A stretch of DNA of 64,000 nucleotides from Macrostomum lignano (GCA_002269645.1 NIVC01000521.1:1-64000); one strand, 5' to 3'; positions 1 to 53,849 are shown, counted from the first letter of the stretch. The notes: generated by a model from the sequence alone, not told the origin. Numbers and translations: made by a program.

Positions 1-531
<531 letters not shown>

Positions 532-13767: not shown

Positions 13768-13975
13768 TTGTCTCGACTTTCTCGGCTCTCGTCTCGACAT
13801 TCTTGGCTCTCGTCTCGACATTCTCGGCTCTCGTCTCGACATTCTCGGCTCTCGTCTCGACATTCTTGGCTCTCGTCTCGACATTCTCGGCTCTTATCTC
13901 GACATTCTCGGCTCTCGTCTCGACATTCTCGGCTCTTATCTCGACTTTCTCGGCTCTCGTCTTCACATTCTCCAC
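13768..13975. repeat. 21-bp minisatellite (TCTCGGCTCTCGTCTCGACAT)n
   Basis: About 10 tandem units abutting the GA tract. Confidence 0.93.
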
Positions 13976-13984
13976 ATTCTTCAG

Positions 13985-16472: not shown

Positions 16473-16868
16473 GAGTTTTGCGCCAACTTGGGGGGCTGAT
16501 GGCTGACAATTGAAATGCTATTTATAATCCTATATACTAAAAATGAGTTGTCTGTGGGTAGGTAGGTATGTGATAGTAGGAAATCTATCAATATGCTGGA
16601 CTAAAACGTTATGTTGATAACGCTAAAACTCTGTATTCTGTATATCGCTCTAGATGAGCTCAAAACTTAACTACTGCCTCAGGTCAGGTGATTATGACTT
16701 TGCGACAAACAGTGCGCCAACTAAAATCGAACGCTAAATGGCTCAGGTAGAACGCAAAAAAGTGCATTAGTCTGTTTATTCACTACTCATCTACTAGTAG
16801 GGCTTTCTAAAGAGTCCTATTTTTGTCGCTTTTTTAGCCGCTTCAGCTCCCTCAGCTTCTTCAGAGAC

Positions 16869-26495: not shown

Positions 26496-27699
26496 TTTAG
26501 CTCGTCAGAGTAGCTAGTCAGAATGCAGCATACTGTTTGCTAGTTTCAGTTGAAATTAAACCTTGATATAAAATTCCTCATCATCTAGGTCAAGAACTCG
26601 CGGACCAATAGGACGAATTGACCAACGGGTGTTCCTTGAGGAAAGAGTAAATTCTCACGGGTGGTCTAGTAAGGAAAGCACCAGTTCTCCCTGCTGGCCC
26701 ATGCACAGAAACTGAGCGATTGGTTATTCTGTTTGGGGATAGACTAATGCTGAATGGTCAACAAACCGCGCTGGTGATCGATGGCTGTAAACCACAGCTC
26801 GATTCTAGACATAGGAAAGGTACAAGGCCTCCTGCATACTAGCAAAGTTTAGAAACTTTCTATGGTGGCAGCTTAGCGGAGACATGGCAGATGAGCTGCC
26901 TAATTCGGCACTTTATTGGGACTTCTAGATCTTGCCTCCCGATCCAATCATTTCAGCAATTCTTCATCATTAGGTCGTGCTTAAGTGCGCAGCCGACATT
27001 TTTCTCGCATCGATGAGTTCTAACTTGCCATTAAGAGAAGCTCAGACAAGAGTCAATGGGGAGGGAGACGCAGCGAGGAGGCAAAAATGTCATAGCCGGA
27101 AGGCGGGCCGCGAGGAGCTTCGTGCCAAGTGCAGCGACGCGGGGAGAAAGTAGCAGTTCAGTCAAGCGAAAGCTCACTGGGCTGGCTTCCGCAACAAACC
27201 TAGCAGTGGGGATTTTGTAGTCTCACAGTGCAGACTTTCTTCGCAGGCATGTGCGATTCTGAAACTACAAATAACTGGCTTAGCAAGGGTACGAGCGCAT
27301 TTATCCGGGATCAGTCGCTTTTAAAACTTCTAGGACTTCGCATCGTCGAATAGCGGTAACGCCATAACGACGAAATTTTACATTGTGGAAACTCATTCAT
27401 CATTATCTCTAATATCCAATCAGAGATCCTCTGATATCCAGGTATTATAATCCCTAATTAGAAATCCAATGTAATTTCCACGTTTTAAACGACCACCGGA
27501 CAAATTTTGAGGCAATTCTGCCCATTCCGCTGACTCCTGAGCAAATACATGTACTCAGCAACATCGAAAAGTCGCCATCACGGAAGATTCCGTCTGTGGT
27601 CGCCATTTTTGAGAGTGCAGGTGTAAAGTCTCTCAATCTTAGCGAGTGACGCAACTTAGCTACGCCGCGGTAGACTCTTGAGTTGAGGAATGAAATGGG

Positions 27700-31946: not shown

Positions 31947-33080
31947 TCAGTGGCGACGAACTCGGTAAGCGGCGGCCGCGGCGGCGGCGGCGGCAGCTGC
32001 GGCTGCCATCTGCTGCTGATGTTGCTGATGCTGCTGCTGATGATGCTGCTGCTGCTGATGATGCAGCTGATGATGATGATGCTGCGGCTGCGGCTGCTGC
32101 TGAGCCAGCTGATGATGCGGCTGGTGCTGGTGCTGGTGATGATGCTGCGGCTGCTGACCCAGCTGGTGGTGGTGCTGCTGCTCGGGGGCCGCGGTAGCCG
32201 GGTACATGGGGCGCAGGGCGGCAGCGGTGGCGAACGGCATGGCCAGCAGGGCTGGCTGGCCTCCAGCAGCGGCGGCAGGCAGCGGGCCGACCAGCAGTTT
32301 GTCCGGCTGCTGCACCAGCTGCACCGGGTACATCTGCTGCCACAGCAGCTGCAGGTGATAATTATGCGCCTCGGCCACGTGGCGGCTGAGCTCGCGGCGA
32401 AGGCGGCTAGCGGCCGGGCAGCCGAACTTATTGAACGGGCAGAGCAGCAGAGACAGCGGGCAGGCCTTCTCAAGGTGGTCCTGCAGGCGCTGTGGCCCGG
32501 CCAGGACTAGGCCGCACCGGTTCGGACAGGGCAGAGGGAAAGCCGGACAGCCAAATAGCAAATGAAAATTGAGCTGCCTATAGGCTGTGCTGTGCTGACA
32601 GAACGGGCAGGCGACTGAGGCCGAAGCCTCGGCGCACTGACAGGCGGCAGCAGCGGCGGCGGCGGCGGATTTCTCCGCGTTGGCGGCGGCTCCGTCAGTC
32701 GAAGAGTCGTCCGAAGCGGTCAGGTGAGCGGCCAGGTGAGCGGCCAGAGTGCCCAGCTCGCAATGGGTCCGACACCTCGGACAGTGCACAAGCAGCTGTT
32801 GGACCTCGCGATCGGTGGCCAAATCGCTGAACACGCCGGCTCCCTGGACGGCGGCCGGGTTGGCGTGGGCGCCCTCGCCGATGGGCGACCGGCACAGCGG
32901 GCAGGTTGGCCGGTAGGGCCCGGGGCCGCCGCCAGCCGTGGCCGAATAGAAGCAGCTGTGACAGAACCGATGGCCGCAGCAGGTCTGCAAAGCTGATCGT
33001 AGATGGCCCAGACAAACCGGACACTTTAACCTGTCCGGGACAGGCTGGGCAAATTCCAAGTCTTCGTGTTCGCACATTTG
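31947..33080 (-). CDS. TRAF-like RING and TRAF-type zinc-finger protein with a polyQ/H/A tail and no MATH domain
   Basis: ORF with a C3HC4 RING (CPVC..CCGHRFCHSC..CPLC), DLATDREVQQLLVHCPRC, and TRAF zinc fingers (CPFC..H..CPAFPLPCPNRC..HLEKACP..CPFNKFGC..H). Likely ATG at 33080 (MCEHED). Confidence 0.85.
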   Translation of the reverse strand, partial: QMCEHEDLEFAQPVPDRLKCPVCLGHLRSALQTCCGHRFCHSCFYSATAGGGPGPYRPTCPLCRSPIGEGAHANPAAVQGAGVFSDLATDREVQQLLVHCPRCRTHCELGTLAAHLAAHLTASDDSSTDGAAANAEKSAAAAAAAACQCAEASASVACPFCQHSTAYRQLNFHLLFGCPAFPLPCPNRCGLVLAGPQRLQDHLEKACPLSLLLCPFNKFGCPAASRLRRELSRHVAEAHNYHLQLLWQQMYPVQLVQQPDKLLVGPLPAAAAGGQPALLAMPFATAAALRPMYPATAAPEQQHHHQLGQQPQHHHQHQHQPHHQLAQQQPQPQHHHHQLHHQQQQHHQQQHQQHQQQMAAAAAAAAAAAAAYRVRRH

Positions 33081-33144: not shown

Positions 33145-33340
33145 GTACCCTAGTGGTCAGAGCGTCGGACTTACGACTGAAAGGTCGGGAGTTCGATTCT
33201 CTACCCACACAGAACAATTTGTGTCCTTGCGCAAGACACTAACTCTGCAGTTGCTTCAGGTCACCCAGCTGTAAAATGGGTGCCAGCCAGCATTAGCTGG
33301 GGTAATTGAGGGCCTGTGGCAACCCCCCCCCACTCCTAAC
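33145..33340 (+). mobile_element. tRNA-derived CORE-like SINE, family A (second copy)
   Basis: TAGTGGTCAGAGCG..GAGTTCGATTC..TGTGTCCTTGCGCAAGACACTTAACTCTG..CTGTAAAATGGG; reverse-complement match to 27700-27997. Confidence 0.78.
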
Positions 33341-33780: not shown

Positions 33781-34729
33781 CTAAGCCCCCAATGCTATAT
33801 CTAGCTGTGCCGTATGAAGAAAATATAAAAAACTAAAGAGGCTGGACAATAAAAGCAGATTATAACAAACAATTTTATAGATAATAATTTAACAATGAGG
33901 TTTTCACAGACACAGATCCGTAAAACCTTGTGACCTTATAAAGCGCTGATAGAATCTAACAGAAAATCTTTCAAATAGCGAAATACAATTTTAATTTTAG
34001 TTGACCAGTATAGGATAGAGAAAAATGGGGATGTAAAATCTATCAGAGAATGACACGAGCGACCCCTAACAGCTGAGCATTCGCAACACGCGTTATTATT
34101 AAAAGCGTGAAAGACGAACAGAGCCTAGTTATACAGGACAACACTACACACGGCTAGTGCACAAAAATTTAACAAACCGGAAGCATGTGCATAATATAGT
34201 ACTCAATAATATAGCAGAACTGATCAGTAGAATATCTGCATCAACGAGATTAGAAAAATAGTAGAAGTTCTATCAATGAAATGCTTTGAAAAATAATTCG
34301 ATAAACGAGACGAATTAAAGTTGCAATGCAATAATAATAACATGAATGGATTGACTGGTGCCCCCCGCGTACACGAACAGACGACATAAATATATGCTTA
34401 TAAACATAGAAGTATTGCGCATAAGACGCTACTCAACTGAGTAGGACTATGGACTAGATAATAAACTGGTGTAAAACATCAGTGCACAAATAATCAGTTA
34501 GACAAATGAATGCTATAAGTTGTAGACCGTCCTTCAATTTAAAATATTCATCAGCCAAAAAAGTATCAATACTGCTAAACTAATGCTACTAATAGGACTA
34601 CTGCTACTACAATACAATAGGTTACTAACACCATGTTTTGCACCACCCCAATAAACTCAAGGCGTAGGCTATAAAGAAAGGATACGTTAGCAAGCAGACG
34701 CTCACACAGGGCGAACAGCTTAAGCCTGA

Positions 34730-35425
34730 AGGGAGTGGGTTGGCCCCTTATCACACAAGCCCGAACCCCAATGGGGGGTTGGCTTCTTATCACACAAGCC
34801 CGAAACCCCAATGGGGGGGGTTGGTCCCTATCACACAAGCCCGAACCCCAATGGGGGGGTTGGTCCCTATCACACAAGCCCGAACCCCAATGGGGGGGGG
34901 GTTGGCCCCTTATCACACAAGCCCGAACCCCAATGGGGGGGGGGTTGGCCCCTTATCACACAAGCCCGAACCCCAATGGGGGGGGGGTTGGCCCCTTATC
35001 ACACAAGCCCGAACCCCAATGGGGGGTTGGCCCCTTATCACACAAGCCCGAACCCCAATGGGGGGCCGGGGTTGGCCTCTTATCACACAAGCCCGAACCC
35101 CAATGGGGGGCCGGGGTTGGCCCCTTATCACACAAGCCCGAACCCCAATGGGGGGTTGGCCGCTTATCACACAAGCCCGAAACCCCAATGGGGGGGTTGG
35201 CCTCTTATCACACAAGCCCGAACCGCAATGGGGGGGTTGGTCCCTATCACACAAGCCCGAACCCCAATGGGGGGTTGGCCCCTTATCACACAAGCCCGAA
35301 ACCCCAATGGGGGGTTGGCCCCTTATCACACAAGCCCGAACCCCAATGGGGGGTTGGCCCCTTATCACACAAGCCCGAAACCCCAATGGGGGGGGGTTGG
35401 CCCCTTATCACACAAGCCCGAACTC
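34730..35425. repeat. ~38-bp minisatellite (GGGGTTGGCCCCTTATCACACAAGCCCGAACCCCAATG)n immediately 3' of the RBR ligase stop codon
   Basis: Tandem units with variable G-run length. Confidence 0.95.
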
Positions 35426-35432
35426 CAAAATC

Positions 35433-37885
35433 TCAGCTCTCAGCCACGGGGCTCTTGGCAAAGAGCCACTCGGGCACAATCGTGCCATCGTCAGAGTCGC
35501 TATCGTCATCCTCGTGCAGCATCACGGTGGTGACGCAACAATAGTACTCAGCCATTGTTGCTGGCGACGAGGAGCAGTCAGTTGCTGCTGCTGGCGAGTT
35601 GCCGGAGACGATGGTGACGCGTCGTTCGGCAGTTGTTGTCGATACGGAATAGGCATCAGCGGCTGCGGCAGCTGCGGCCGCGCGTACGCAGAAAGCATCG
35701 CGCGACAGTTGCGCCTTCCGTCGAAGAGCCCGACGAAGCCGTCGCCGACGCAGAGCGGTGAAAGCGGCGTAGGCGGCAAGCACGCCGGAGCCGACCAGGG
35801 CGGTGCCGAGGCGAGGACCAGCAGCGCCGGTGCGGCGATCAGCTGGACGGCCAGCACGCAGCCGCGGACAAAGCGGCGCAGATGTGGCCGATCCGGCAGC
35901 AGGTTGTAGCGACAGCCCATCACCGACATGCGGGATTTGTGCGAGCCAAGCAGCGGGCAGCGGGCGTAGCGCTGGCCGCACAGGTAGCAAAATCTGGTGC
36001 CGCACTGAGAACACGTCATGGAGTCGCAGCCCTGGCTCTTCTGTATGTAGGCTCCGCAGCCGGGGCACTGACGCGCGTTCCTCTGCGCACCCTGAGCGGC
36101 GTCGCAGCGCTTTGACCAGGCCAGCAGTTCTTGGTCGCTGGCGCGAAACTGCCGACAGGTGACGCCTCGGTGCATTGGCGCGTGGCAGGGGAAGCACCAG
36201 ACTAGGCCGCAGGAGGAGCATTCCACCTGGGAGGTTGGTTTGAAAGGCTCTTACTTTTGATCACAACTTTAGAAGCCACACAGGACAGGAAGGCATTGGA
36301 GGAGACACATCATATGGGACAGACAGGCATCAGAGGAGACACATCATATGGGACAGACAGGCATCAGAGGAGACACATCATATGGGACAGACAGGCATCA
36401 GAGGAGACACATCATATGGGACAGACAGGCATCAGAGGAGACACATCATATGGGACAGACAGGCATCAGAGGAGACACATCATATGGGACGGACAGGCAT
36501 CAGAGGAGACACATCATATGGGACAGGAAGGCATCAGAGGAGACACATCATATGGGACAGGAAGGCATCTGAGGAGACACATCATATGGGACAGGAAGGC
36601 ATCGGAGGAGACACATCATATGGGACAGGAAGGCATCGAAGGAGACACATCATATGGGACAGGAAGGCATCAGAGGAGACACATCATATGGGACAGGGAG
36701 GCATCGGAGGAGACACATCATATCGGACAGGGAGGCATCGGAGGAGACACATCATATGGGACAGGAAGGCATCGGAGGAGACACATCATATGGGACAGGA
36801 AGGCATCGGAGGAGACAGGAAGGCATCGGAGGAGACAGGAAGGCATCGGAGGAGACAGGAAGGCATCGGAGGAGACACATCATATGGGACAGGAAGGCAT
36901 CGGAGGAGACACATCATATGGGACAGGAAGGCATCGGAGGAGACACATCATATGGGACAGGAAGGCATCGGAGGAGACACATCATATGGGACAGGAAGGC
37001 ATCGGAGGAGACACATCATATGGGACAGGAAGGCATCGGAGGAGACACATCATATGGGACAGGAAGGCATCAGAGGAGACACATCATATGGGACAGGGAG
37101 GCATCGGAGGAGACACATCATATCGGACAGGGAGGCATCGGAGGAGACACATCATATGGGACAGGAAGGCATCGGAGGAGACACATCATATGGGACAGGA
37201 AGGCATCAGAGGAGACACATCATATGGGACAGGGAGGCATCTGCAGAGAAGACGCATCACATGGGAGAAGAAGCACAGACCATGGCACAAAGAGACATAC
37301 CTGGAGCGGACGGCGCCAGGCCTTAGCAGACAGTTCAGTTGGGCAGGCGCAGCCTGGGCAAGTCTTACGCAACGGGCCATTAGCCCTAGAGTTATCTAGA
37401 AATCTTTGATAACGCCAGCGCTCATCGGATGGCAGACGGCACATGACCTCTGCCTGCGGCATGATCTTGTCGCACAGCAGATTGGGACAGCCAACGGTAG
37501 TTTGAGCCTGCCGCATGGTCTCCAATGCGTAGGCTGTTAAGCATCTGGCGCAGTAGATTTTAGCGCAGCAGGGTCGGGCAAAGGTACTAACGCAAGCTAG
37601 GCAGATGTCGCAGACTAGGCCAATGCACAGATCGCCCAGCGGTACAATAGCATTGTGCGCATCAGTTTGCCATTCGGCTTTGCCATCGGTAGCGGCTAAA
37701 TGAGCAGCGATAGCTCGATAAGGCAGCGGGTACTGAGCCAGATTTGACAGGCTGGGAGGGCCGCAGCGAACTTGGCCGCGTAACGATTTGGCTAGCCAGC
37801 GTTGCAGACTCTGGCGCGGCACCGATGTTAACTCGTGCGGATCCAGCAGCTCCTCAGCTGGCTGGCTGGCCGCGGCTTCGGCCAA
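35433..37885 (-). CDS. RBR (RING1-IBR-RING2) E3 ubiquitin ligase with C-terminal membrane anchor, RNF217/RNF144-like
   Basis: Exon 37885-37301 has RING1 (CDIC..RPCCAKIYCARC..CPNLLC) and the IBR start (KTCPGC). Exon 36226-35433 has the IBR end (CSSCGLVWCFPCHAPMH..C), RING2 (CPGCGAYIQKSQGCDSMTCSQCGTRFCYLC) and GCRYNLLPDRPHLRRFVRG. A 1-nt frameshift near 35812 lies in the TM segment. There is no in-frame ATG before RING1. Confidence 0.85.
36285..37255. repeat. 34-bp intronic minisatellite (GAGGAGACACATCATATGGGACAGGAAGGCATCG)n
   Basis: Fills the RBR gene intron (37300-36227). Confidence 0.96.
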
Positions 37886-38084
37886 CTGCAGGGCAAAAGC
37901 AGGGTCGGGGATGGGACTTTTTGATTGTCTTTTGATAGGAAGACGTGACTCTCATGTGATCTGCTCTATAGCCGTCTGCTAATACTGAGTAGAGTCAATC
38001 ATGCATGAAAAATTTCTACCACCTAACACTGACAAACTGGGAAGAATTAGATACAGACCTACGGACAGGCAGACAGTAAGAATA

Positions 38085-39625
38085 AAAAGGCAGACACAGG
38101 GACAGGCAGACACAGGGGCAGGCAGACACAGGGACAGACAGACACAGGGGCAGGCAGACACAGGGGCAGGCAGACACAGGGGCAGGCAGACACAGGGGCA
38201 GGCAGACACAGGGACAGACAGACATAAGGACAGGCAGAAGGCAGACACAGGGACAGGCAGACACTGGGACAGGCAGACACAGGGACAGACAGACATAAGG
38301 ACAGGCAGAAGGCAGACACAGGGACAGGCAGACACAGGGACAGGCAGACACAGGGACAGACAGACATAAGGACAGGCAGAAGGCAGACACAGGGACAGGC
38401 AGACACTGGGACAGGCAGACACAGGGACAGACAGACATAAGGACAGGCAGAAGGCAGACACAGGGACAGGCAGACACTGGGACAGGCAGACGTTGGGACA
38501 GGCAGACACAGGGACAGGCAGACAGCAGACACAGGGACAGGCAGACAGCAGACACAGGGACAGGCAGACACAGGGACAGGCAGACATAAGGACAGGCAGA
38601 AGGCAGACACAGGGACAGGCAGACGTTGGGACAGGCAGACACAGGGACAGGCAGACAGCAGACACAGGGACAGGCAAACACAGGGACAGGCAGACACAGG
38701 GACAGGCAGACGTTGGGACAGGCAGACACAGGGACAGGCAGACAGCAGACACAGGGACAGGCAAACACAGGGACAGGCAGACACAGGGACAGGCAGACAT
38801 AAGGACAGGCAGAAGGCAGACACAGGGACAGGCAGACATAGGGACAGGCAGACATAGGGACAGGCAGACACAGGGACAGACAGACACTGGGACAGGCAGA
38901 CATAGGGACAGGCAGACACAGGGACAGGCAGACACAGGGACAGGCAGACATAGGGACAGGCAGACATAGGGACAGGCAGACATAGGGACAGGCAGACGTA
39001 GGGACAGGCAGACACAGGGACAGGCAGACACAGGGACAGGCAGACACAGGGACAGGCAGACATAGGGACAGGCAGACAGCAGACACAGGGACAGGCAGCA
39101 GACACAGGGACAGGCAAACACAGGGACAGGCAGACACAGGGACAGGCAGACACAGGGACAGGCAGACAGCAGACACAGGGACAGGCAGACACAGGGACAG
39201 GCAGACACAGGGACAGGCAGACAGCAGACACAGGGACAGGCAGACAGCAGACACAGGCAGACACAGGGACAGGCAGACACAGGGACAGGCAGACACAGGG
39301 ACAGGCAGACACAGGGACAGGCAGACACAGGGACAGGCAGACACAGGGACAGGCAGACACAGGGACAGGCAGACACAGGGACAGGCAGACACAGGGACAG
39401 GCAGACACAGGGACAGGCAGACACAGGGACAGGCAGACACAGGGACAGGCAGACACAGGGACAGGCAGACACAGGGACAGGCAGACACAGGGACAGGCAG
39501 ACACAGGGACAGGCAGACACAGGGACAGGCAGACACAGGGACAGGCAGACACAGGGACAGGCAGACACAGGGACAGGCAGACACAGGGACAGGCAGACAC
39601 AGGGACAGGCAGACACAGGGACAGT
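38085..39625. repeat. 16-bp minisatellite (GGACAGGCAGACACAG)n between TPR and the RBR gene
   Basis: Homogeneous units at the right end, degenerate toward the left. The [12 protein letters not shown] ORFs are artefacts. Confidence 0.97.
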
Positions 39626-40122
39626 CACTAAATGAGAGGCGACAATGCTAGTCCAGAAACTTGGCTACATGCAGAATGCCGACACTATACACTCGGGTCT
39701 GAACAAGCAAAAGTTTAAATAAAATAGAGCAGAAACACAAAGTCTGCTGCGTCAAAGACGCAACCAACACGGGCCGAGAATGCGGCTGCTATTATTATTA
39801 TTAGTATTAATACAGAATATGTTGACAAGCAAGTCTTTTGCTATTGATAAGTTAACGAATGCCTAGGATGTCAATGGGCGTGCAAATTCAACAAATGACG
39901 GGGGCCACAACGATAAGCCAAAAGAGGAATAAGCAAACTTCCAAATTGCACTGCCTATCGTATATACTTCGTCAAGGAGATACAGACACGACAGGGTGGC
40001 CCAATGAAAAACTGACAGATTTAGCGGCAGTCAGAAAAAAAATAATGCTGAAAATGCGGCAATCAGTTTGATTTTCTCATGTAAATTAAAACTATAGGCA
40101 ACAGAAGATCTTCATAACAAAG

Positions 40123-43100
40123 TCAAGGCGAATCGCTGCGCTGTATCGTATACTTTCCCCCCGATGGGGCCGGCCTACCGCCTGGCTGCTGTTGCTGCTG
40201 ACGAGCCGCCTGACCCGAGAGCGTCGTAGTTGTCGCCCGTCTGACAGACGACGATGGCCCAACGTCGCCCTGTTGTTGCATGCTTGGCCACGCCGGCTGC
40301 TGCTGCTGTTGAGTTGATGAAGCCGCACCAAACAGGCTGGAGGTGCCACTACCGCCGAGGCCGCTGGTTCCAGCGCCGCTGCCGAAGATGCCGCCAACAG
40401 ACGACGCAGAGGCGGCCGCCTGGCGGAAGCTGAACGGCGCCGAAGCAGCTGAAGTGGCCGACGCGCCAGCAAACATCGACGATTGCTTTGAAGTGGCCGC
40501 GTCGTCGCCGGCTTCGGCTTCATCTTCACCCGGCTCGGCCTCGTCATCATTGTCCTCCTCTTCCTCTTCCTGCTCCTCTTCGTCGCCTTCTTCGTCTTCG
40601 CTTTCTTCCTCTGCCTCGCCTTCGCCATCGTCTTGGTCTTCGCCTTCGTCTTCCATCGATTGTTGAGCCTCGGCGTCGGCCTCCTCTGTGGCCTCCTGGT
40701 CCTCGTCGGAGTCGCTGCTCAGGGTGATGGTCTCCCCAGGAGCGATGGGCGGCGGTTTCTGCAGCAACTGTCTGAACATCTGAGCTCCGCCGCGATGCCC
40801 GAACGACGGCGCGGCAGCGGCGGCAAAGTACGCGTCACTGTCGTCCTCTTCTTCCACCTCCTCCTCGTCGTCATCATCTTCTACTTCGCCTTCTTCTGCC
40901 TGGTCATCCTCATCTTCTTCCTCTTCCTGAGAGCCCTCAGCTTCCGTGTCTCTTTCGCCTTCAACCTCCGCTATATGCACGTCATCATTGTCATCTTCCT
41001 CTTGGTCCTCTTCTTCTTCTTCAGCACTGACAGCGGCGGCCTCTTCAACTTGGTCTGAACTCATCGCTTCGGAAAGCAGAGCCGACTGGAATCCGGGCTG
41101 CTGCTGAAGTCGGGCTCGCTTCGGCTCTGAGGCGGCGGCTTGATCTTGGAAACCGAACGAGCCTCGACTGCCGGCTTCTTCGTCATCGGCGGCCGACCCG
41201 GCTGCGGAGGCTGACGCCGACGGCTCGCGCTGACGATCCAGATTGACGGTGGACGACGACGCGGAGGCGGCACTGTCGGATTCCTCCAGCAATTGTCGGG
41301 GCCGTTTCAGACTGACGCCGCCGCCGACCCCGACGCTGCTAGAAGAGGCGGCTGCACCTGTCGATGTCGCTGTCGAAGCGGACGGCATCGCCGAGATCTC
41401 AGCCGATGGCATGGGCGTCACCATAGCCTGCGGCGGCAGCTGCGGCTGGTGAAGCACAGCTTGCGTCTCCTCCGACGACACCGGGGCAGCTGACGACGAT
41501 GACGGAAGTGTGGATGTTGGTTGCGGCGGTGGAGCAATAACTGGCTGCTGCTGCGGTGACAGAGCCTGCTGCTGACCACTGATGGCTGCGGTGGCCTCGT
41601 GCTGCGGCGTCGGTTGCACGGCAACAACAATAACAGAGGATGGCTGAGAAGGCCGCAGTAGCGGAGTTATCTCAGCCGTCTGCTTGGCTTCCCTAGCAGC
41701 TGCCGGCTGCTGCGGCGTCGGCTTGACGGTCATTGTGTGCTTCAAAGCCTCCGTGTCCGGACTGCTCTTTATCACTGTGGACGGCGCCGATTGTTGCGAG
41801 GTCTGCGGCTGCAATTGCTGCTGCTGCTGCTGCTGCGTCGGCGGCGGCGGCGGAGTTTGAGGCGGCTGCTGAGCCTGGGGCTGCGAGTGCGGCCTCTGCT
41901 GCTGCTGAAGCTGAGCCTCGAGTTCGCTTAACCGACCTCTTAGCCTGGCATTGTCAGCGCCGAGCATTCTGGCGTGCCCTTCGATAGCGGTGACTCGCTT
42001 GCGAGCCTCGGACACTTCCAAGCGTAGTTGGCTGTTCTCCGCTTGCAACTCCTCAACACGACGTTTTGCCGCTTCAGCCTCTTGCTGCAGTTGCTGTTGA
42101 CGTTGTTGCTGCTCTTGCTGCTGCTGCTGCTGTTGTTGTGACTGCTGCTGAGGCTGCTGCTGCTGCTGTTGCAATTGCGCTTTCAACTCGGTAGATTCTT
42201 GCTTATATTTGCGCGCAACCTCTTGAATCTTTTTGAATCGCTCTTTTAACTCCTCGTGGCCTCGCTGCAGCCGGTCCCGCTCGGCCGTGCCTTCTTGGGC
42301 CTCCCGCCCGGCCGTGGCCAGAGACGATTCGGCAGCTTTCTGAGCAGCCTCGAGGCCGGATATCCGGCTGGCTGTGTCGGCCAAGCGCTGGGCCAGGCGC
42401 TGCCTATCCGCCGTGGCGTCTTCCAGTTCGCGCCGCAGGCGGTCCCGCTCTTGATTGGCCTGACGCAGCGCCTCTGGGTCAACCAGCTGCTGCTGCTGTT
42501 CCTGATACTGGCGCTCTTGACGCTCGACGCGTTGCGCCAATTCTGAGGCGCGCTGACGCCAGCGGGCGCATTCTTCGCGAACTAGCGACAGTTCGGATTC
42601 AAATTTTTTTCGCTCTTCTCGCAAGTTATTGAGCTCGGTGCGCAGCGGCTCAAGCTTAGTATCGGATTCGGCGGCCGACTTCTCAAGCTCAGCCAGACGC
42701 GAGCGCAGTTCGGCTTGTTCACGTCTGAGCAGTCGGTTGCTCTCGGTTACCAGGCTCAGCTGTTCGACTCGTTCCAATAGGCCAGCGTGCGCCGCGTCCG
42801 TAGCAACCGAGGCTCGCTGGCGCTCCCGTTCAGCGGTTAACTCGTTCTTGGCCCGCTCGGCCGCCGTACGATTGTCTTCGGCCAGCCGCCGCAGCCTGGC
42901 GGTCTCTTCGCGTAGTTGAGCCGCCTGACTCTCAGCCAAATTGCGCTCCTTGCGCAGATAGCGAACCAACTGCAGCAGCTGCTCGGCTGACTTGTTGGAC
43001 TCCGGGATCGCGCTGGCATCAGCAGGAGCCTCCGCCGCATAGGACTCCTCTGCCTCCGGCCGCCTCATAGCCAGCATCTGCGTGGCGGTCAGCTCAACCT

Positions 43101-46100
43101 GGTCCTGCAGCTTGGCGCACATCTCTCTGGCGTCCGCTAGCCGAGTTTCCAATGCCGCCTTCTCCTCCGACAGGGCGTCGGACGCAGCCTGCCGTTCGGC
43201 CAGGCGCTCCTCGAACTCCGCCTTAGCCGAAGCGTGCTCGGCGCGCAGGCTGTACAGCTCCGATTGCAGATCGGCTAGAGACTGTTTTGTCTCGGCGTGG
43301 GCGCGCACATCGACAGCGTGCAGCACCAGCTCCTGTTCGTATTTGGCTTCCGCTTCCGTTGCCCTGCTGGCAGCCGCTTGGCCATCCTCGGAGGCGCGTT
43401 TCTCGGCGGCTAACGCGGCTTCGAGCGACTCCTCGGCGTTGCGCGCCCGCTGCTCGAGTTCGGCGAGGCGGCTAGCAGCGTCGGCCCGTTCGGACTCGGC
43501 TTCGGCGCCTAGGCGCTCCGCTTTGGCGCGCCAATCGGCGGCCTGGCGTTCGGCGTCTGCGGCTGCCGATCGGCACCTGCGAGGTGAAACATGGGTTATT
43601 AAACAATCTTATTTGATACTATCGGGCGGCCGGTGAGAGGTGCTACAGTGGGCTGCGGTCTGTAAGACACAGGTGTTACAGTGGGCTGCGGTCTGTGAGA
43701 CACAGGTGTTACAGTGGGCTGCGATCTCTGAGACACAGGTGTTACAGTGGGCTGCGGTCTGTAAGACACAGGTGTTACAGTGGGCTGCGGTCTGTGAGAC
43801 ACAGGTGTTACAGTGGGCTGCGGTCTGTGAGACACAGGTGTTACAGTGGGCTGCGGTCTGTGAGACACAGGTGTTACAGTGGGCTGCGGTCTGTGAGACA
43901 CAGGTGTTACAGTGGGCTGCGGTCTGTAAGACACAGGTGTTACAGTGGGCTGCGGTCTGTGAGACACAGGTGTTACAGTGGGAAGCGGGCGGCACTGTCC
44001 AGAGACACAAAGAGTGCTTACTGCTCAGCTGCCTCCTGCTCCCGGCGCACTCTGGCTTCGACATCAGTCAGCAGCTGCTCGTGCACAGCCGCCTGCTCGG
44101 CCAGGCTCTCTTCAACCCTTGCCGACACGTCGCGATATTCGACGGCCTCGGCGCGCAATCGATCGGCTTCGCGTCTGGCCGACTGCAATTCGGCTTCGAG
44201 TTCGGCGCAGCGAAGGCGCGCCAACCGGACGGCGCCGTCGTCTTCAGCGGAGTCAGCGGCGCCGGACTGCGATTTCTCTGTAGTTGACTGCTGCTGAGCA
44301 GACGGAGCATTGCGCAGCTCAGTCTGGACTCGTTCCAGCTCGGCGTCGCGAGCGGCCAGCGACTCGGCCAGACGGGCTCGCTCAGCCTCTACGCCGGCAA
44401 GCTGTTCGCTTAGGCGGCGCACGTTTCGCTCTAAATCGGCGCGCTCCTCGGCCAGGCGGCCGGTTTCGCTGGCCAGCCGGGCGCGCAGCGAGTCGGCCTC
44501 GCGTTGCAGCGTTTCTACTCGCGAATCGGCGGCGTCGCGCGATTCAACTTCGCGCCGTTCTAAACTGCGCCGCATCTCTTCTAGGCTGGCGAATAGGGCG
44601 CGCTGCTGGCCGGCCGCTTCGCTGCGCAGCCGGTCGTTCTCGGCGCGAAGGCGCGCCTCGCTAGGCCTTAGTGTGTCCAGCTGGGAGCGAGCCGAGGCCA
44701 GCTGCGACTCCAGCCGGGCAACGCAATCGGCGCTGGAGGCGGCGGCAGACTTCGCCTGGCTGGCCTCCTGCTCGCTGCGGGCCCGGGCTTCGATAGCCCG
44801 CTCGGCCGACTGGTGCAGGGCGGCGATTTCGCGGCGCAGCTCGGCGGCGTTGGACTCCTGCGGTGATTGACAGGTGGGGCATTGGGATGCATTGGGTATT
44901 GTGACACACGTGTTATAGCCTGAAATCTTGTTAGACGGGTGTTACAGTGGAAAACCTTGTTAGATACAGGTGTTAAAATGGACCACCCTGTTAGACACAG
45001 GTGTTACAATGGACAACCCTGTTAGACACAGGTGTTACAATGGACAACCCTGTTAGACACAGGTGTTACAATGGACAACCCTGTTAGACACAGGTGTTAA
45101 AATGGACCACCCTGTTAGACACAGGTGTTAAAATGGACCACTCTGTTAGACACAGGTGTTAAAATGGACAACCCTGTTAGACACAGGTGTTACAATGGAC
45201 AACCCTGTTAGACACAGGTGTTACAATGGACAACCCTGTTAGACACAGGTGTTAAAATGGACCACCCTGTTAGACACAGGTGTTAAAATGGACCACCCTG
45301 TTAGACACAGGTGTTACAATGGACAACCCTGTTAGACACAGGTGTTGAAATGGACCACCCTGTTAGACACAGGTGTTAAAATGGACAACCCTGTTAGACA
45401 CAGGTGTTACAATGGACAAAGCTGTTATACAGTGAAGAGCCATGTTAGACACAGGATGTTACAGTGGACAGCCATGTTAAACACAGGATGTTACAGCAGG
45501 ACTCGCGAGACTGTGTTAGACATATCTCTATTAAGCAACCCATAACTCAACTACCTGCAGTCTGGCCTTCTCATGATGCGACTCCAGCTGAGCAGACAGT
45601 CGAGCATTAAGCTGTTTAAGCCTGTCGATTTCGCTCTTAGCCGTCTCCAATTCTTTGTCCCTAGCGGCGTCCCGCTGCGCCCTGTCGGCTTTGTAGGCTG
45701 AGAACTGCTCGCCGAGTTCGCTTAGCAACTGCTTGAGCTCGTCAACGGAGTTAGCAGCGGCACCGCCGGCCTGCTGAGGCTGCTGATCTGTCGCGCTAGT
45801 ACCGGATGCTGCTCGAACAGGCGATACGGATGGCTGCCGATGCTGCTGCTGCTTCTGGGAAACCCCGTCCGGCGATGCCAGCTTGGTTAGTGATGAAGCT
45901 TCGGCTAGTGCGGTCTGGTGGAAATTCAGGATTAAATAGAGATGTTTAATAGATAAGAATAGCGATATGCACAGACAATAGACCGGTTTCTAATAATCTG
46001 CACCATTTATCAGTGCACAATAATCGATTCAAATTCTTTTCTTGCTACTCATTAGTAGGCAAAGTAGGATGATCTCAGATTACCCGATGAAAGCGGTACC

Positions 46101-49100
46101 TAGGCTAAGAAGCGTCTCAGAGTCGTTGCAGTTGCAGGTAACACAGCTAGGTAATATAGGCAAGAAGTGACTCTGGACGACTCTAAAACGATGAGATGTC
46201 ACTGTAAAAGTTTTCAGAGAGTCGCTTTATAAAGTCACCTGAGTTGTGTTTAAAGCGCATTTGCGTCGCTTGATTAATTAGAGTCAGATCTCTAGCAAAA
46301 GTTGGGCGCTAACCCCTGATTAGTCGTCAATCGTCAGATCGATGACTGTGCTGACTCCCTCCACAGGGACAGATGGGCGGGCACCCAAAACTGCCGGCAA
46401 TCTCGTGCCGCGGTTCCGTACCCCTCCCGCAGGCTCAGAAACGTCCTTCTGAACCAAAATCGGAAGGATATTCGAGCCCTTGTCATGACCTTTACCGGCC
46501 GCCATGGCAATCTCGCCAGGCACTGCTTTCTCGGAGGCGACCTCAAGAATGAACTTTGCCCTTTTTGCGAGTACGACAATGAAGATGCTCAGCAATTTGT
46601 TTGTCACTGCCCTTTCTTTACCAGAGACCGGCTACGCTACCTCTGGCCGAACCCGTCCATTGACGAGGTCTGCCAGCCCGACAGCATCCCATGGCTCATC
46701 CAGTTCCTTCGGGCGACTAGACGAGCCACTTTCTTCCCAACGGAAGATCACGCTGCAGGACGGACCGGCGGATCACCCTGATTGGCCCCACGCCTCTGCC
46801 TGTCTGCGGGCCTTCAGGGGCTAGCGGAATAGGGCGACCCCCTTCGCCTCGCCGCTGTGTCTACGGACCACCCTGCAGCTGAGTCTAAGTAAAAAAGACG
46901 TTTAGGGCCGAGAGTCGCTGTATAAAGTCACCTGAGTTGTGTTTAAAGCGTCGCTTGATTAATTATAGAGTCACATCTCTATCGAAAGTTCAGCGCCAAC
47001 GACTCTTGGCCAACTCTATTACGATTTAACAACTCACGTGACGCAACAGTCGCCTCTCCGTCGCATTAGACGCGTTTGAGTTAAAAGTCAACAAAAGTGG
47101 CCCCAGAGTCGCTAGAGTGAGTATTTACCTGCTCCGCTTCGCTAAGGCCAAACAGGCCGGCCAACTGCGGCCCGGCATGGCACAGCAACACGGCTCGCAT
47201 AGCGTCCCGCTGCCTGGCCGCGGCGCCTAGCAGCGTTCGATGCTGAGCTTCAGCAGATTGCAGGCGCTCCAATTCGGCCGCCATGCTGGCCAGCTGGGAG
47301 CGCAGTTCGGCCTCTGCTGGCTGGCCGGAGGCTGCAGCCGACCCGGAGTCAGTGGCGGCTTCGGCTGCTTCCATCTCCTCTAGCCGGTTGGCCAGCTCAC
47401 GGCTCACCTGTCGGGGACAGGGTGGAGTACAGGTTGGTCATAAAAGGTGAATAATTGTAGAATTATAAACAGAGGGGGCAGAGGACTGTCTATTTAAGGA
47501 CACTGTGGGGAGCAGAGGACTGTCTATTTAAGGACACTGTGGGGAGCAGAGGACTGTCTATTTAAGGACACTGTGGGGGGCAGAGGACTGTCTATTTAAG
47601 GACACAGTGGGGGGCAGAGGACTGTCTATTTAAGGACACTGTGGGGGGAGCAGAGGACTGTCTATTTAAGGACACTGTGGGGGCAGAGGACTGTCTATTC
47701 AAGGACACAGTGGGGGGCAGAGGACTGTCTATTTAAGGACACTGTGGGGGGAGCAGAGGACTGTCTATTTAAGGACACAGTGGGGGGCAGAGGACTGTCT
47801 ATTTAAGGACACTGTGGGGAGCAGAGGACTGTCTATTTAAGGACACTGTGGGGGGCAGAGGACTGTCTATTTAAGGACACAGTGGGGAGCAGAGGACTGT
47901 CTATTTAAGGACACAGTGGGGGGCAGAGGACTGTCTATTTAAGGACACTGTGGGGGGAGCAGAGGACTGTCTATTTAAGGACACTGTGGGGGCAGAGGAC
48001 TGTCTATTTAAGGACACAGTGGGGGGCAGAGGACTGTCTATTTAAGGACACTGTGGGGGGAGCAGAGGACTGTCTATTTAAGGACACAGTGGGGAGCAGA
48101 GGACTGTCTATTTAAGGACACTGGGGGGCAGAGGACTGTCTATTTAAGGACACTGGGGGGCAGAGGACTGTCTATTTAAGGACACAGTGGGGGGCAGAGG
48201 ACTGTCTATTTAAGGACACTGGGGGGCAGAGGACTGTCTATTTAAGGACACTGGGGGGCAGAGGACTGTCTATTTAAGGACACTGGGGGGGGCAGAGGAC
48301 TGTCTATTTAAGGACACTGTGGGGGCAGAGGACTGTCTATTTAAGGACACAGTGGGGGCAGAGGACTGTTTATTTAAGGACACAGTGGGGGGCAGAGGAC
48401 TGTCTATTTAAGGACACTGTGGGGGCAGAGGACTGTCTATTTAAGGACACTGTGGGGGCAGAGGACTGTCTATTTAAGGACACTGTGGGGAGCAGAGGAC
48501 TGTCTATTTAAGGACACTGTGGGGGGCAGAGGACTGTCTATTTAAGGACACTGTGGGGAGCAGAGGACTGTCTATTTAAGGACACTGTGGGGAGCAGAGG
48601 ACTGTCTATTTAAGGACACTGTGGGAGCAGAGGACTGTCTATTTAAGGACACAGTGGGGCAGAGGACTGTCTATTTAAGGACACTGTGGGGGGAGCAGAG
48701 GACTGTCTATTTAAGGACACTGTGGGGGCAGAGGACTGTCTATTTAAGGACACTGGGGAGCAGAGGACTGTCTATTTAAGGACACTGGGGAGCAGAGGAC
48801 TGTCTATTTAAGGACACTGGGGAGCAGAGGACTGTCTATTTAAGGACACTGGGGGGCAGAGGACTGTCTATTTAAGGACACTGGGGAGCAGAGGACTGTC
48901 TATTTAAAGACACTGGAGAGAAGATGCATCCAGCCCGAAGGTCCACCTGCAGCAGCCGCCTATTCTGCTCCTGAAGCTCTTCAACATCGCCGTATGTCAG
49001 CAGCCTTTCAGTGATGACGTCACCGGCTCGCCGAACAGCCGACTGCGACGAGGACGGCGACTCGCCGGCAAACGGGCGATAGGGCGAGCTGGGCGGCGGG

Positions 49101-52100
49101 GCGCCAGTCTTGGCCATGTGAAGCTCCCACAGCAGACGGACTACCTGGCGGCTCTGATCAGAGTGGCTGTCAGAGAGGCGCCGGTTCTCACGCTCCAGAT
49201 GGCGCAGTCCGCGCAGCCTGTCCTGACAGTCGGCCTTGAGGTCGGCCAGTTCAGCTAACGCCGAATCCAATTGTCGGCTTAATTGAGCCGCGGCCGCCGT
49301 CAGTCTGGCGTTGTCCTCGCGCAATCGGCGAACACCCGGAGCGCCGGCTTCAACTTCGCGTAGCACCGTCTGCATTGATTGACGCAGCGCGGCGGCCTCC
49401 TCGCGTTCCCGGTGCAGCCGGCGCTGCAGATCCGCGTACTCCACGCACAGTTCGCTTAGCGGCTTGCCCCGCTTCAGCAGGTCGCGAACAGCCGCCGCCG
49501 CAGGCGTCATCTCGGCCACCTGCTCGGCCGTGTCCGATTCGCCGCGCAACAGCTCGATTTGAGAGTTGGCCAGCTGGGGGAGTTGGGCGAAAATGGCCGA
49601 GTGAGAAATTTAGTGGCTCATTTAGTCATTAACCTGTCCCCTCATTTAGTCATTAACCTGTCCCCTCATTTAGTCATTAACCTGTCCCCTCATTTAGTCA
49701 TTAACCTGTCCCGTCATTTAGTCACTAACCTGTCCCCTCATTCATTAACCTGTCCCGTCATTTAGTCACTAACCTGTCCCCTCATTTAGTCATTAACCTG
49801 TCCCGTCATTTAGTCACTAACCTGTCCCCTCATTTAGTCATTAACCTGTCCCGTCATTTAGTCACTAACCTGTCCCCTCATTCATTAACCTGTCCCGTCA
49901 TTTAGTCACTAACCTGTCCCCTCATTTAGTCATTAACCTGTCCCATCATTTAGTCACTAACCTGTCCCCTCATTCATTAACCTGTCCCGTCATTTAGTCA
50001 CTAACCTGTCCCCTCATTTAGTCATTAACCTGTCCCGTCATTTAGTCACTAACCTGTCCCCTCATTCATTAACCTGTCCCGTCATTTAGTCACTAACCTG
50101 TCCCCTCATTCATTAACCTGTCCCGTCATTTAGTCACTAACCTGTCCCCTCATTCATTAACCTGTCCCGTCATTTAGTCACTAACCTGTCCCCTCATTCA
50201 TTAACCTGTCCCGTCATTTAGTCACTAACCTGTCCCCTCATTCATTAACCTGTCCCGTCATTCAGTCACTAACCTGTCCCTTCATTTAGTCATTAACCTG
50301 TCCCGTCATTTAGTCACTAACCTGTCCCCTCATTTAGTCATTAACCTGTCCCGTCATTTAGTCACTAACCTGTCCCCTCATTCATTAACCTGTCCCCTCA
50401 TTCAGTCACTAACCTGTCCCTTCATTTAGTCATTAACCTGTCCCGTCATTTAGTCACTAACCTGTCCCCTCATTTAGTCATTAACCTGTCCCCTCATTTA
50501 GTCACTAACCTGTCCCGTCATTTAGTCATTAACCTGTCCCCTCATTCATTAACCTGTCTCCTCATTTAGTCATTAACCTGTCCCCTCATTCAGTCATTAA
50601 CCGACTTTGACTAATAAACTTACTACGTACTTATTCACTAAGCTGACTACTCACTTAGTCACTACTCACCTATCAATTAATTTAAGTGAACCGCTCTCAC
50701 CTGCAATTCGGCCTCCTTTTTCTCTAGCAGCGCTCTCAGCTCGGCCAGTTCAGTCTCGAGTCGGCCAGCAGCGGCGGTCCGCTCAGCCTCTGACCGGCTG
50801 AACTCCTCGGCGCTACGTCGCAGGTCGTCCTGCAGTTCGCCGACAGCTTCGAGTAGTTGAGCGCAGCGCTGCTCTTGCTCCTCGGCGCCGGATCTGTACA
50901 CGGCAGCCAGTCGGCGCTGCGACTCCAGTTCGCCGCCCAGCGCCTCCTCCAGCCTGGTCCGCTCGTCGCGAGCTTCGCGCAGCCGTTCTAGCAGTCGATC
51001 GTGCTGCTCGCGCATAGCCGACTGAGACTCGCGAGCCGACTCTAGCTGAGCAGTCAGAGACTCCAGCTCGCCAGTCCGACGGTCCAGCTCCAGTTGGTAT
51101 TCGCGATCCCGCTCGCGAGCCGCCTGTCGGGCGGTGAGAATCTCGTCTGTCTTGGCGGCCAGCTGGCGTTCCAGCCAGGCCAGGTGAGTCGACCGTTCCG
51201 AGTCCGACTGCTCGGCCGAGGCCAGGCGCAGAGTGGCCGATGATTCGCTAATGCGGACCTGTGAGGGTAATGTTTAATATGCTACTGTGAGTAGAGTAAT
51301 TCAGTCTGTTTAAAATAATTTTACTTTAAATTCAATGTACTTTTTTAAAACTATTAAATTTAATCCCCTTTTTTTACCAGTACTCAATGTCCGATTTCTC
51401 CCGGACCACAGCGAAATCCTATGCCTGAATTCCCCTCCGAATCCCATGACAAATTCCTCCAACCCAACAGAGATAACGACTAAATTCCCCCAACCCTACT
51501 GAGATAACATGACTAAATTCCCCCAACCCTACTGAGATAACATGACTAAATTCCCCCAAGCCCACTGAGATAACATGACTAAATTCCCCCAACCCTACTG
51601 AGATAACATGACTAAATTCCGCCAAGCAAACTGAGATAACATGACTAAATTCCCCCAACCCTACTGAGATAACATGACTAAATTCCTCCAACCACACTGA
51701 GATAACATGACTAAATTCCCCCAACCACACTGAGATAACATGACTAAATTCCTCCAACCACACTGAGATAACATGACTAAATTCCTCCAACCACACTGAG
51801 ATAACATGACTAAATTCCCCCAACCACACTGAGATAACATGACTAAATTCCCCCAACCTCACCAAGAAAACATGCGCATGATTTGAATTCCCACCAAGAT
51901 TCCATGCCTGAATTCCCCTTGGTAATATAAATCTATAAAGTATCTTTCAACTCAGCGCTCACCTGATCCAGCTGCACCTGCTTCTCAACAACCTCTCTCT
52001 CGGCCTTGTGCAGCTGCTCCCTAAGCCGTTCGCATTCGCCGCCAAGTCGTTCAACTTCGCCGGCAAGTCGACGCGTCGATTCGGCTAAATTGTCGCGCTC

Positions 52101-52478
52101 GGCGCGCAATTCGACGCATTCAACTCGTAGGCGCTCTTTGGCATCGTGAGCCGAGTCTAGCTGGGCGCGCAGCTCACATTTGGCACTCTCTGCTCGGCTA
52201 ATTTCGTCCGTCAGGCGCGCTAATTCAGTTTGAACTGATTGCAATTTAGCCCGGTCGCTAGCGGCATCGGCTTCAAGAGCTTTGGACTTGGCCGTGGCCT
52301 CGAATACTCGCTGCTCGCTGTCCACTCGTTGCATTTCGCAACGCTCTCTGGCGCTGGCGAGGGCGGCCTGCAGGCTGTCGATGACTTCGAATAGATTCTG
52401 GCGCTGCCCGTCTGACAGGCTGGACCACACGGATTGGTCCACGCCGCAGGCCTGAACCAGTTGGTAGTCAGCTGTGGC
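40123..52478 (-). CDS. TPR: Nucleoprotein TPR (Megator/Mlp1 family nuclear basket coiled-coil protein)
   Basis: Exons 52478-51963, 51258-50701, 49573-48947, 47407-47129, 45914-45555, 44857-44022 and 43576-40123 total 6630 nt, in frame. TPR-family motifs: QRVDSEQRVFE, ELESQRRLAAVYRS, VITERLLTYGDVEELQEQNRRLL, KYEQELVLHAVD, QLLQLVRYLRKERNLAE, LLERVEQLSLVTESNRLLRREQ, and an acidic low-complexity tail. No ATG at the 5' end. Confidence 0.92.
43640..43982. repeat. 33-bp minisatellite (GACACAGGTGTTACAGTGGGCTGCGGTCTGTGA)n, TPR intron 6
   Basis: About 10 tandem copies. Confidence 0.96.
44935..45500. repeat. 31-bp minisatellite (CAGGTGTTACAATGGACAACCCTGTTAGACA)n, TPR intron 5
   Basis: Tandem copies, degenerate at both ends. 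Confidence 0.95.
46330..46888 (+). mobile_element. 5'-truncated non-LTR retrotransposon (R1/LOA/I-group-like ORF2 C-terminus) in TPR intron 4, antisense to TPR
   Basis: Translation reads RW..NCRQSR..LLNQNRKDIRALVMTFTGRHGNLARH..CPFCEYDNEDAQQFVCHCPFFTRDR, a C-terminal zinc-knuckle region typical of these LINEs. A GC-rich 3' UTR and a short A tail follow. Confidence 0.75.
47470..48915. repeat. ~32-35 bp minisatellite (GCAGAGGACTGTCTATTTAAGGACACTGTGGGG)n, TPR intron 3
   Basis: Occupies almost the whole intron (48946-47408). Confidence 0.97.
49615..50600. repeat. 24/20-bp minisatellite (CATTTAGTCATTAACCTGTCCCCT)n, TPR intron 2
   Basis: Alternating unit variants. Confidence 0.96.
51465..51860. 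repeat. 33-bp minisatellite (ACTGAGATAACATGACTAAATTCCCCCAACC[C/A][T/C])n, TPR intron 1
   Basis: About 12 tandem copies. Confidence 0.95.
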
Positions 52479-53849
52479 CTGCAATGCCAGTTGGCACGTG
52501 TATATTCTGTTTAATTATGCTGGATAGCAATTTTGTAATACCGTTCAGAAAGCACAAATGTACTCTTGATCATGCACTAATACACACATTCACACATGTT
52601 TTAGAGCAGTCCTGACTTTCTAATCGTCAGGAGCATACATGCGCAACACCCGGCCAGCCGCCGGCTGGCGAAGGGTCCAGACAAGGTAAATCGCAAAAAT
52701 GCCCACCCAAAATAGAGACAAAGTACTAACTAGATGACAACTCATTTAGCCTTAATAATGCAGTCAAAGTTACTCCTGCCATTTACCCAAAGGTGGGTGT
52801 GCACAAAAATGACCTAGGGGGCTATGCAATCCACAATCATAAGGGCCAACCCCCAAGACACAGACGTGCACATCCCAAACAATTAGTAAGTCAAAGTCAC
52901 TGTTTTCATTAAACCTAAACCCAAAAAATTTTTTTACAAAATTTCCTATCTTTAAAGAAAAATATTGTCACAAAATATTTTTTGTATAGCATAGTACTCA
53001 TACTATAGTCGCACTACATAAATACTATGTAAAGTATTTATGTATTATAGATACTTTATAAATAATATATAATATATATTTATTTTATTGTGTATATACT
53101 ATACATTTTTATTTTCAATGCAAAAAGAACTCTCAAGCCTGTGGTCACTAGTCAAGGACTTGAAGAATGGAGATTTTCAATGTTGTATACACATTGCATG
53201 ATTAAGATAATAAGGGCTAACATTAAGATAAATGCAATATTAATCATTTTGATATAATAAATGAGATCTATTGATAAACCATAGGTTAAAGTATCACTAT
53301 TAGTCTTCAAAAAATTCACATTTTGGCAGACAACCATTGCTATTGTTAATGCATTCTAATAGTAGAATACTTAGGAATACATTTAGATTTTTTATTCAGG
53401 CATACATATAATAATTTGTAACCTATAGTTTAGATCATGGCAGGTATCTATGGGAACAAAATTCCTAGCTTTTTGATTCTATATCATTATAAATTAGAAT
53501 GAAATTTATGCAAAGAATAGAGTTGCTTGCATGCTAATTTTATATATATTGTTTCAGAAACAAGAATTTGAATCAAACTAATGAACAAACTAATGCTCTG
53601 TACTTTTCTTTTTTATATTTAAAGCAAACAACTTACATCACCAAACTTAGTGTTGAAAGATTGTTCCAGCAATGTAAGTCTCTTCTTTCAAAGTTCAAAA
53701 CTCAAGGAACAGTTTGCATTTGAAATTTCCTAGTTTAAAGCATTGAATTTTTGAATGTACATTCACTGCCTACTACAGTGAGAGGCTTGCAAGTTTATGC
53801 ATTGAATTTCACTGTCCGCCCCTATTGCAGCCAAGGTCTGAACCGCGCC

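Follow-up and report, generated by a model that had tools for sequence, protein, structure and literature searches.

It is established that flatworms use the AUG at the end of their spliced leader (SL) as an initiator codon (Cheng 2006, summarised in PMC9851317 and PMC12582326). The same summaries state that in Schistosoma mansoni 28% of trans-spliced mRNAs have the leader AUG in frame and that more than 40 complementary DNAs (cDNAs) need it. In the genus Macrostomum, the final ATG of the leader has been termed a translation start codon in a genus-level genome paper (PMC10468722). For Macrostomum lignano, a single leader of 35 nucleotides (nt) has been described, CGGTCTCTTACTGCGAAGACTCAATTTATTGCATG, ending ...TTGCATG, together with the estimate that trans-splicing affects about 30% of all genes and 45% of those conserved with human, the finding that [T/C]TNCAG is the leading motif at trans acceptors while cis acceptors show just CAG, and the finding that about a third of donors are non-consensus (PMC8629364). 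Here we consider a 64,000-nt stretch of M. lignano DNA (GCA_002269645.1, NIVC01000521.1:1-64000; 'the window'), the first 64 kb of its scaffold, whose bases 47876-25522 agree in full with the deposited NIVC01000521.1:25522-47876 and in which the genes for the nucleoprotein TPR and for an RBR E3 ligase both appear to lack an initiator ATG of their own. We think it likely, reading the junctions from the genome and its annotation, that both mRNAs are trans-spliced and take their methionine from the leader.

The anatomy of the two starts is the same in each case. On the minus strand, the TPR coding start reads ACTGGCATTGCAG, or GGCATTGCAG/GCC ACA GCT GAC around the proposed junction (marked by the slash), with 52478 as the first exon base, and the RBR start reads CTTTTGCCCTGCAG, or TTTTGCCCTGCAG/TTG GCC GAA, with 37885 as the first exon base. 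If TPR is left unspliced, its upstream frame holds a TAA at 52517-52515 and then 12 codons, LNRIYTCQLALQ, without an ATG, and that of RBR holds a TGA at 37954-37952 and then 22 ATG-free codons up to the acceptor. Another AG near TPR, AAACAG/, would start the exon at 52506, which is 28 nt upstream of the proposed start and out of frame. Downstream, the earliest in-frame ATG is codon 49 in TPR (52334) and codon 124 in RBR (37516), the latter inside RING1. That the two genes are what they seem is clear from their domains: TPR carries coiled-coil domains specific to the nucleoprotein TPR/Mlp family (Pfam PF25785, E = 1e-21, and PF07926, TPR_MLP1_2, E = 3e-12), and the ligase belongs to the RBR E3 ligases by its RING1-IBR-RING2 module (Pfam IBR, PF01485, E = 2e-13; residues 92-278 aligned with ARIH2 residues 139-326 at E = 4e-11). 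A preliminary description of this DNA had named both genes, had placed their starts at an in-frame AG with no ATG, had noted that a stop is reached upstream before any ATG and had judged an AAACAG near 52510 to be out of frame; on each of these points our reading confirms it.

Both candidate trans sites, TTGCAG/ at 52484-52479 and CTGCAG/ at 37891-37886, match [T/C]TNCAG, compared with none of the seven cis acceptors of the same two genes (six in TPR, one in RBR), of which none has a T at -5 (2/2 versus 0/7, Fisher p = 0.028); across the window, about 10% of CAGs are preceded by YTN. Since both first exons begin at codon position 1, a leader AUG joined to either would be in frame. In the mechanism that we propose, TPR and the RBR gene stand head to tail on the minus strand, each with its first coding exon edged by a trans-type acceptor, and the spliceosome would join the 35-nt leader (...UUGCAUG) to bases 52478 and 37885, so that the terminal AUG of the leader would fall in frame 0 with both open reading frames (ORFs) and translation would begin with Met-Ala-Thr-Ala-Asp... 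in TPR and with Met-Leu-Ala-Glu-Ala... in RBR. Several features of such genes can be pointed to here, namely a leader in the host, a trans-type acceptor where the first exon begins, a leader AUG predicted to be in frame and, in both genes, the lack of a genome-encoded in-frame AUG able to give a functional protein. Neither the leader nor a long 3' part of it occurs in the window or in one of the two other assembly copies of the locus discussed below (L002), the few TTGCATG matches there having no ORF after them. Rfam finds no RNA families in the window, and the window holds no SL RNA gene. We infer both the trans-splicing event and the ribosomal use of the leader AUG.

The case is strongest for the ligase. 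Its gene consists of two exons (37885-37301 and 36226-35522), and six of the cysteines with which RING1 binds zinc (Cys92 to Cys115) precede codon 124; with these ligands ahead of it, the first genomic ATG cannot be where the predicted protein begins. As a query it matches two GenBank proteins of M. lignano with 100% and 99% identity, both labelled 'partial', and the transcript-based GenBank coding sequences (CDSs) of all three genomic copies are labelled '5' partial'. These CDSs start at LAEAAAS in PAA62579.1, at EAAAS in PAA70295.1 and at AAAS in PAA81612.1, which is to say 0, 2 and 3 codons after the proposed junction, and PAA81612.1 is the window's own copy, equal to our model minus its first three residues. 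The GenBank annotation was built by cutting transcripts at their 5' ends where SL-trimmed reads peak and then applying TransDecoder (PMC5730564). As every one of these CDSs is 5'-partial and opens within three codons of the AG, the annotators' transcripts begin at the proposed junction, without an ATG.

A second and quite different line of evidence comes from comparing the three copies of the locus in the assembly Mlig_3_7: the window (NIVC01000521.1), L002 (NIVC01001252.1) and L004 (NIVC01001918.1). The junction reads CCCTGCAG/TTGGCC in the window (GCAG), CCCTGATG/TTGGCC in L004 (GATG) and CCCTCATG/TTGGCC in L002 (CATG), and the altered bases in L004 and L002 are the last three and the last four bases of the leader (...GCATG). 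Otherwise the roughly 200 nt upstream of the junction differ between the copies by one single-nucleotide polymorphism (SNP) and one 5-nt indel, and over these 200 nt together with about 500 nt downstream there are isolated substitutions (around 0.6%) and that one indel only. Mlig_3_7 was polished by Pilon with RNA-seq as well as DNA reads (PMC5730564), and because of this the simplest reading would be that SL-bearing reads overwrote the acceptor in two of the copies, leaving the footprint of a leader CATG joined to TTGGCC. Whichever origin of GATG and CATG holds, the predicted start of the RBR protein is a methionine directly before Leu-Ala-Glu. Leader-derived bases may also sit in acceptors elsewhere in Mlig_3_7. 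Taking the ligase by itself, we consider initiation at the leader AUG highly probable.

For TPR the same model is the best fit and, resting on homology and on CDS lengths, reasonably probable. Our seven-exon model ends in a TGA at 40125-40123 and its exon junctions match those of UniProt A0A1I8I885, an ab initio model of 3169 amino acids from an older assembly, which also uses the same AG as an acceptor. The best PDB match of exon 1 is the N-terminal crystal construct of human TPR (5TO7), where residues 27-145 align with chain residues 22-140 of the human protein at E = 0.03, a marginal but colinear match with an offset of 5, so that the predicted flatworm N-terminus is about five residues longer than the human one, and internal Met49 falls within the stretch that is homologous to human TPR. 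In GenBank, the TPR product is 2209 amino acids long for L002 and 2207 for L004, and the model starting at the AG gives 2209. Relative to the window, exons 4-7 are gap-free in L002 and 6 nt longer in L004; provided that exons 1-3 are free of indels, these lengths imply that the other-copy CDSs would begin 0 and 4 codons past the AG, and the offsets so obtained repeat the pattern seen in RBR. Protein searches with TPR exon 1 and with exons 1-3 gave no match, and an exhaustive TPR protein search returned only the chimeric A0A1I8I885 and a spurious coiled-coil match. With this, the other claims of the preliminary description are also supported: TPR homology appears to begin near the junction, the host is a flatworm whose leader ends in ATG (PMC8629364), and trans-splicing of both mRNAs with a leader methionine is supported, for RBR by the 5'-partial CDSs and the copies with ATG or CATG at the junction, and for TPR as the best fit.

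 From the TPR stop to the RBR acceptor there are 2237 nt, of which a minisatellite array accounts for 1537, leaving 700 nt. Same-strand neighbours less than 1 kb apart after subtraction of repeats have been taken as operonic (PMC8629364), and with its repeat-adjusted spacer of 700 nt on a single strand the pair would count as operonic by this published definition, the trans-splicing of RBR being itself part of our proposal. TPR and RBR probably form an operon in which RBR comes second, and if so trans-splicing would provide its cap as well. The whole 2237-nt spacer is free of GT[AG]AG donors. Minisatellites fill TPR introns 1, 3 and 6 and both intergenic spacers (51422-51946, 47600-48800, 43612-44067, 38088-39624 and 34578-35404), with a period of about 33 nt in the first TPR intron and one of 16 nt between TPR and RBR, and they are open in two or three frames, giving long spurious ORFs. 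TPR intron 4 contains, antisense to TPR, a 153-codon open frame with a Cys/His-rich stretch (46320-46778, plus strand); it has no Pfam match and is possibly the remnant of a retroelement.

Table 1. Coordinates of the proposed trans-splice sites, exons and spacer of TPR and RBR (window positions unless another copy is named; UTR, untranslated region).
Feature	Position	Strand	Basis or remark
TTGCAG, putative SL trans-splice acceptor of TPR	52479..52484	-	sequence; fits [T/C]TNCAG; also acceptor in UniProt A0A1I8I885
In-frame TAA 12 codons 5' of TPR acceptor, no ATG between	52515..52517	-	sequence
TPR exon 1, 172 codons, ATADYQLVQ...	51963..52478	-	frame 0 if AUG directly precedes base 52478
TPR gene model, 7 exons	40123..52478	-	2209 amino acids + stop; GenBank gene end also 40123
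TPR exons	52478-51963, 51258-50701, 49573-48947, 47407-47129, 45914-45555, 44857-44022, 43576-40123	-	
TPR 3' UTR and intergenic/outron stretch before RBR, 2237 nt	37886..40122	-	no GT[AG]AG donor
Minisatellite, 16-nt period, ~92 copies, most of the TPR-RBR spacer	38088..39624	.	TRF
In-frame TGA 22 codons 5' of RBR acceptor, no in-frame ATG between	37952..37954	-	
CTGCAG, putative SL trans-splice acceptor of RBR	37886..37891	-	sequence; fits [T/C]TNCAG; GATG / CATG in other copies
Four bases before RBR exon	window 37886-37889; L002 9991-9994; L004 ~9997-10000		GCAG; CATG; GATG
RBR exon 1, 195 codons, LAEAAASQP...	37301..37885	-	RING1 cysteines from codon 92
RBR exon 2: IBR, RING2, hydrophobic C-terminal segment, stop	35522..36226	-	

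Four kinds of observation weigh against a leader-donated start: the SL-like bases in the other RBR copies could be genuine mutations and not read footprints; the GenBank TPR product at the window locus is 2238 amino acids long, 29 more than our 2209, and there are possible exons and donors upstream of TPR; flatworm acceptors are often common to cis- and trans-splicing (PMC12582326); and near-cognate CTG and TTG codons stand in frame at or just before both junctions.

The first of these doubts survives best. GATG and CATG would then be real, and the RBR acceptor would have mutated, in two paralogues, to a genome-encoded ATG at the exact position of the leader AUG, which we regard as unlikely but as deserving to be taken seriously. 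The ATG is precisely in frame before TTG GCC in both copies, and L002 and L004 share another SNP and a longer C-terminal isoform, so that a CAG-to-ATG change could have been inherited from a common ancestor. A C at -1 makes a good initiation context by the Kozak consensus, and this too counts in its favour. The price, however, is two or three adjacent substitutions, all of them towards the leader, in a neighbourhood that differs by some 0.6%, whereas a graded replacement of three and of four bases is what polishing with SL-bearing reads would be expected to produce. Moreover, both of these copies are still '5' partial' in GenBank, with CDSs that start past the ATG in question, in one case at the codon directly after it. 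That a real CAG-to-ATG change took place in two recently duplicated RBR copies, at the exact position that the leader AUG takes in the window copy, is in our view rather improbable; if true, it would mean that leader-donated and genome-encoded starts are interchangeable states that flip between the paralogues of a neopolyploid genome. The graded series GCAG, GATG, CATG is the sole unexpected element of the locus, and represents either a polishing artefact or, less likely, a genuine switch of start codon.

The second doubt concerns mainly TPR, and holds that an unrecognised cis-spliced upstream exon provides the ATG and that, in the main isoform at least, the AG at 52478 and/or 37885 acts as a normal cis acceptor; we think this distinctly unlikely. 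If the 29 surplus residues of the GenBank product are N-terminal, then an upstream exon is indeed annotated at TPR. A 29-codon stretch at 54172-54086, which lies in a GC-rich repeat, starts with an ATG and is followed by a GT, would yield exactly 2238 amino acids, and A0A1I8I885 joins the TPR AG to an upstream exon in the same repeat region. The donor of this stretch is, however, poor (GTGTGG), and there are four other equally exact chance candidates in 11.5 kb. We looked for the source of the 87 extra bases in other donor and acceptor sites, in GC-AG introns, in cassette exons 29-33 codons long and in upstream exons with an ATG, and found no convincing splice signals. Three consensus donors do lie less than 4 kb upstream of the TPR acceptor (53636, 54252 and 56387), none of them with an in-frame ATG, and a fourth, less than 6 kb upstream (58467), has in-frame ATGs but would give products of 2220 or 2294 amino acids, so that no consensus donor within 6 kb upstream of TPR gives an in-frame ATG start that fits 2238. 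A0A1I8I885, for its part, is a chimera that gets its ATG only by crossing a distinct membrane-protein ORF upstream, as well as transposon-like fragments and a repeat. The lengths of TPR in the other two copies are as expected with no upstream exon, and the homology with human TPR allows about five extra residues and not 29. For RBR, the spacer offers no consensus donor and all three CDSs are partial. A non-consensus donor may still lie upstream of either gene, since about a third of M. lignano donors are of that type (PMC8629364). Because flatworm acceptors commonly serve in both cis- and trans-splicing, a minor isoform made by cis-splicing at the TPR AG may nonetheless exist alongside the leader-started one. 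The membrane-protein ORF absorbed by A0A1I8I885 is itself a hydrophobic-rich ATG-to-stop frame of 331 codons (61760-62752, minus strand), 9.3 kb upstream of TPR, which has no Pfam match and for which six guessed start points matched no GenBank product.

The remaining doubt, that the start is encoded in the genome after all, at the first internal AUG (TPR codon 49, RBR codon 124) or at a near-cognate CUG or UUG next to the junction, is very improbable indeed: in-frame CTG and TTG do occur at -4 and -2 in TPR and at -2 and 0 in RBR, and initiation at non-AUG codons close to the leader is reported for nematodes (PMC9851317), but trans-splicing would cut away codons 5' of the AG, the leader would already offer an in-frame AUG, and the internal starts would cost RBR six zinc ligands of RING1 and TPR the stretch matching human residues 22-44.

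The rest of the window deserves a short description. Downstream of RBR and on the same strand is a third gene (31947-33077, minus strand) with RING and zf-TRAF domains (Pfam) and a genomic ATG at 33077. Its GenBank CDS starts two codons past that ATG in the window and in L002 (EHEDLEF, 374 amino acids), and the L004 product is 373 amino acids long, with a start two codons past the ATG that is probable, its first residue not having been read. A TTTCAG/ lies 20 nt upstream of this ATG, where a leader AUG would fall out of frame. We considered and dropped the idea that the ATG of the TRAF-like gene is leader-derived, as this stretch does not vary among the three copies and is unlike the end of the leader. 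Upstream of the same gene, at 33150-33210 (minus strand), the sequence GTGGGTAGAGAATCGAACTCCCGACC... resembles the reverse complement of a tRNA T-arm and is probably a fragment of a short interspersed element; ARAGORN finds no tRNA genes in the window. Further along there are two tandem class-C G-protein-coupled receptor genes of the metabotropic-glutamate type (21558-26504 and 8353-13752, minus strand; ANF_receptor, NCD3G, 7tm_3), the second with an in-frame repeat expansion of about 1 kb at 10730-11900. Long low-complexity arrays occupy positions 1-4000, at the scaffold start, where they are CT/GA-rich, and 13740-16600, where a GA-rich array of about 2.8 kb has a GC skew near +1. In the literature that we searched, no mention of Mlig021995 was found.

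What, then, is the significance of two more genes of this kind? Known since 2006, the mechanism is to be expected often in a species with 30% of its genes trans-spliced, so TPR and RBR are new examples of something that is textbook knowledge for flatworms; they leave the biology unchanged, and their consequences are practical. Gene finders that demand a genomic ATG will truncate such genes or invent upstream exons for them, and this locus furnishes both outcomes, with all three RBR copies 'partial' in GenBank and A0A1I8I885 fusing TPR to an unrelated membrane-protein ORF and transposon-like pieces. Reporter and rescue constructs for such M. lignano genes need an added ATG. In addition, Mlig_3_7 seems to hold leader bases at acceptors, which would destroy real AGs and create false genomic ATGs; if this artefact of polishing is real, it could also be mined to map trans-splice sites.

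Of the systems already described, the closest in mechanism are the slORFs of S. mansoni (Cheng 2006), which, as that work is summarised in later papers, have a leader ending in AUG, an acceptor at a codon boundary and a methionine donated in trans, just as we propose here; as in TPR and RBR, the ORF itself carries no AUG ahead of the essential domains. The schistosome examples, in the same summaries, come from cDNAs and translation assays, whereas ours belong to a free-living macrostomid and are read from genome sequence and annotation. Closest in organism is the leader and operon system of M. lignano itself (Wudarski et al. 2017, PMC5730564; Ustyantsev and Berezikov 2021, PMC8629364), with the same species, the same leader and the same acceptor motif. 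TPR and RBR likewise lie on one strand with a repeat-adjusted spacer below 1 kb, and they are conserved genes, the class that is most often trans-spliced; those two papers do not discuss which genes need the leader AUG. A more distant parallel is provided by the SL2 operons of C. elegans, in which the downstream gene is capped by a trans-spliced leader whose acceptor lies shortly past the 3' end of the upstream gene, as is also proposed for RBR. C. elegans uses a dedicated SL2 family for this purpose, and its leaders are not known to carry a terminal AUG. M. lignano, in contrast, has a single leader, and at this locus we propose that it supplies the start codon as well.

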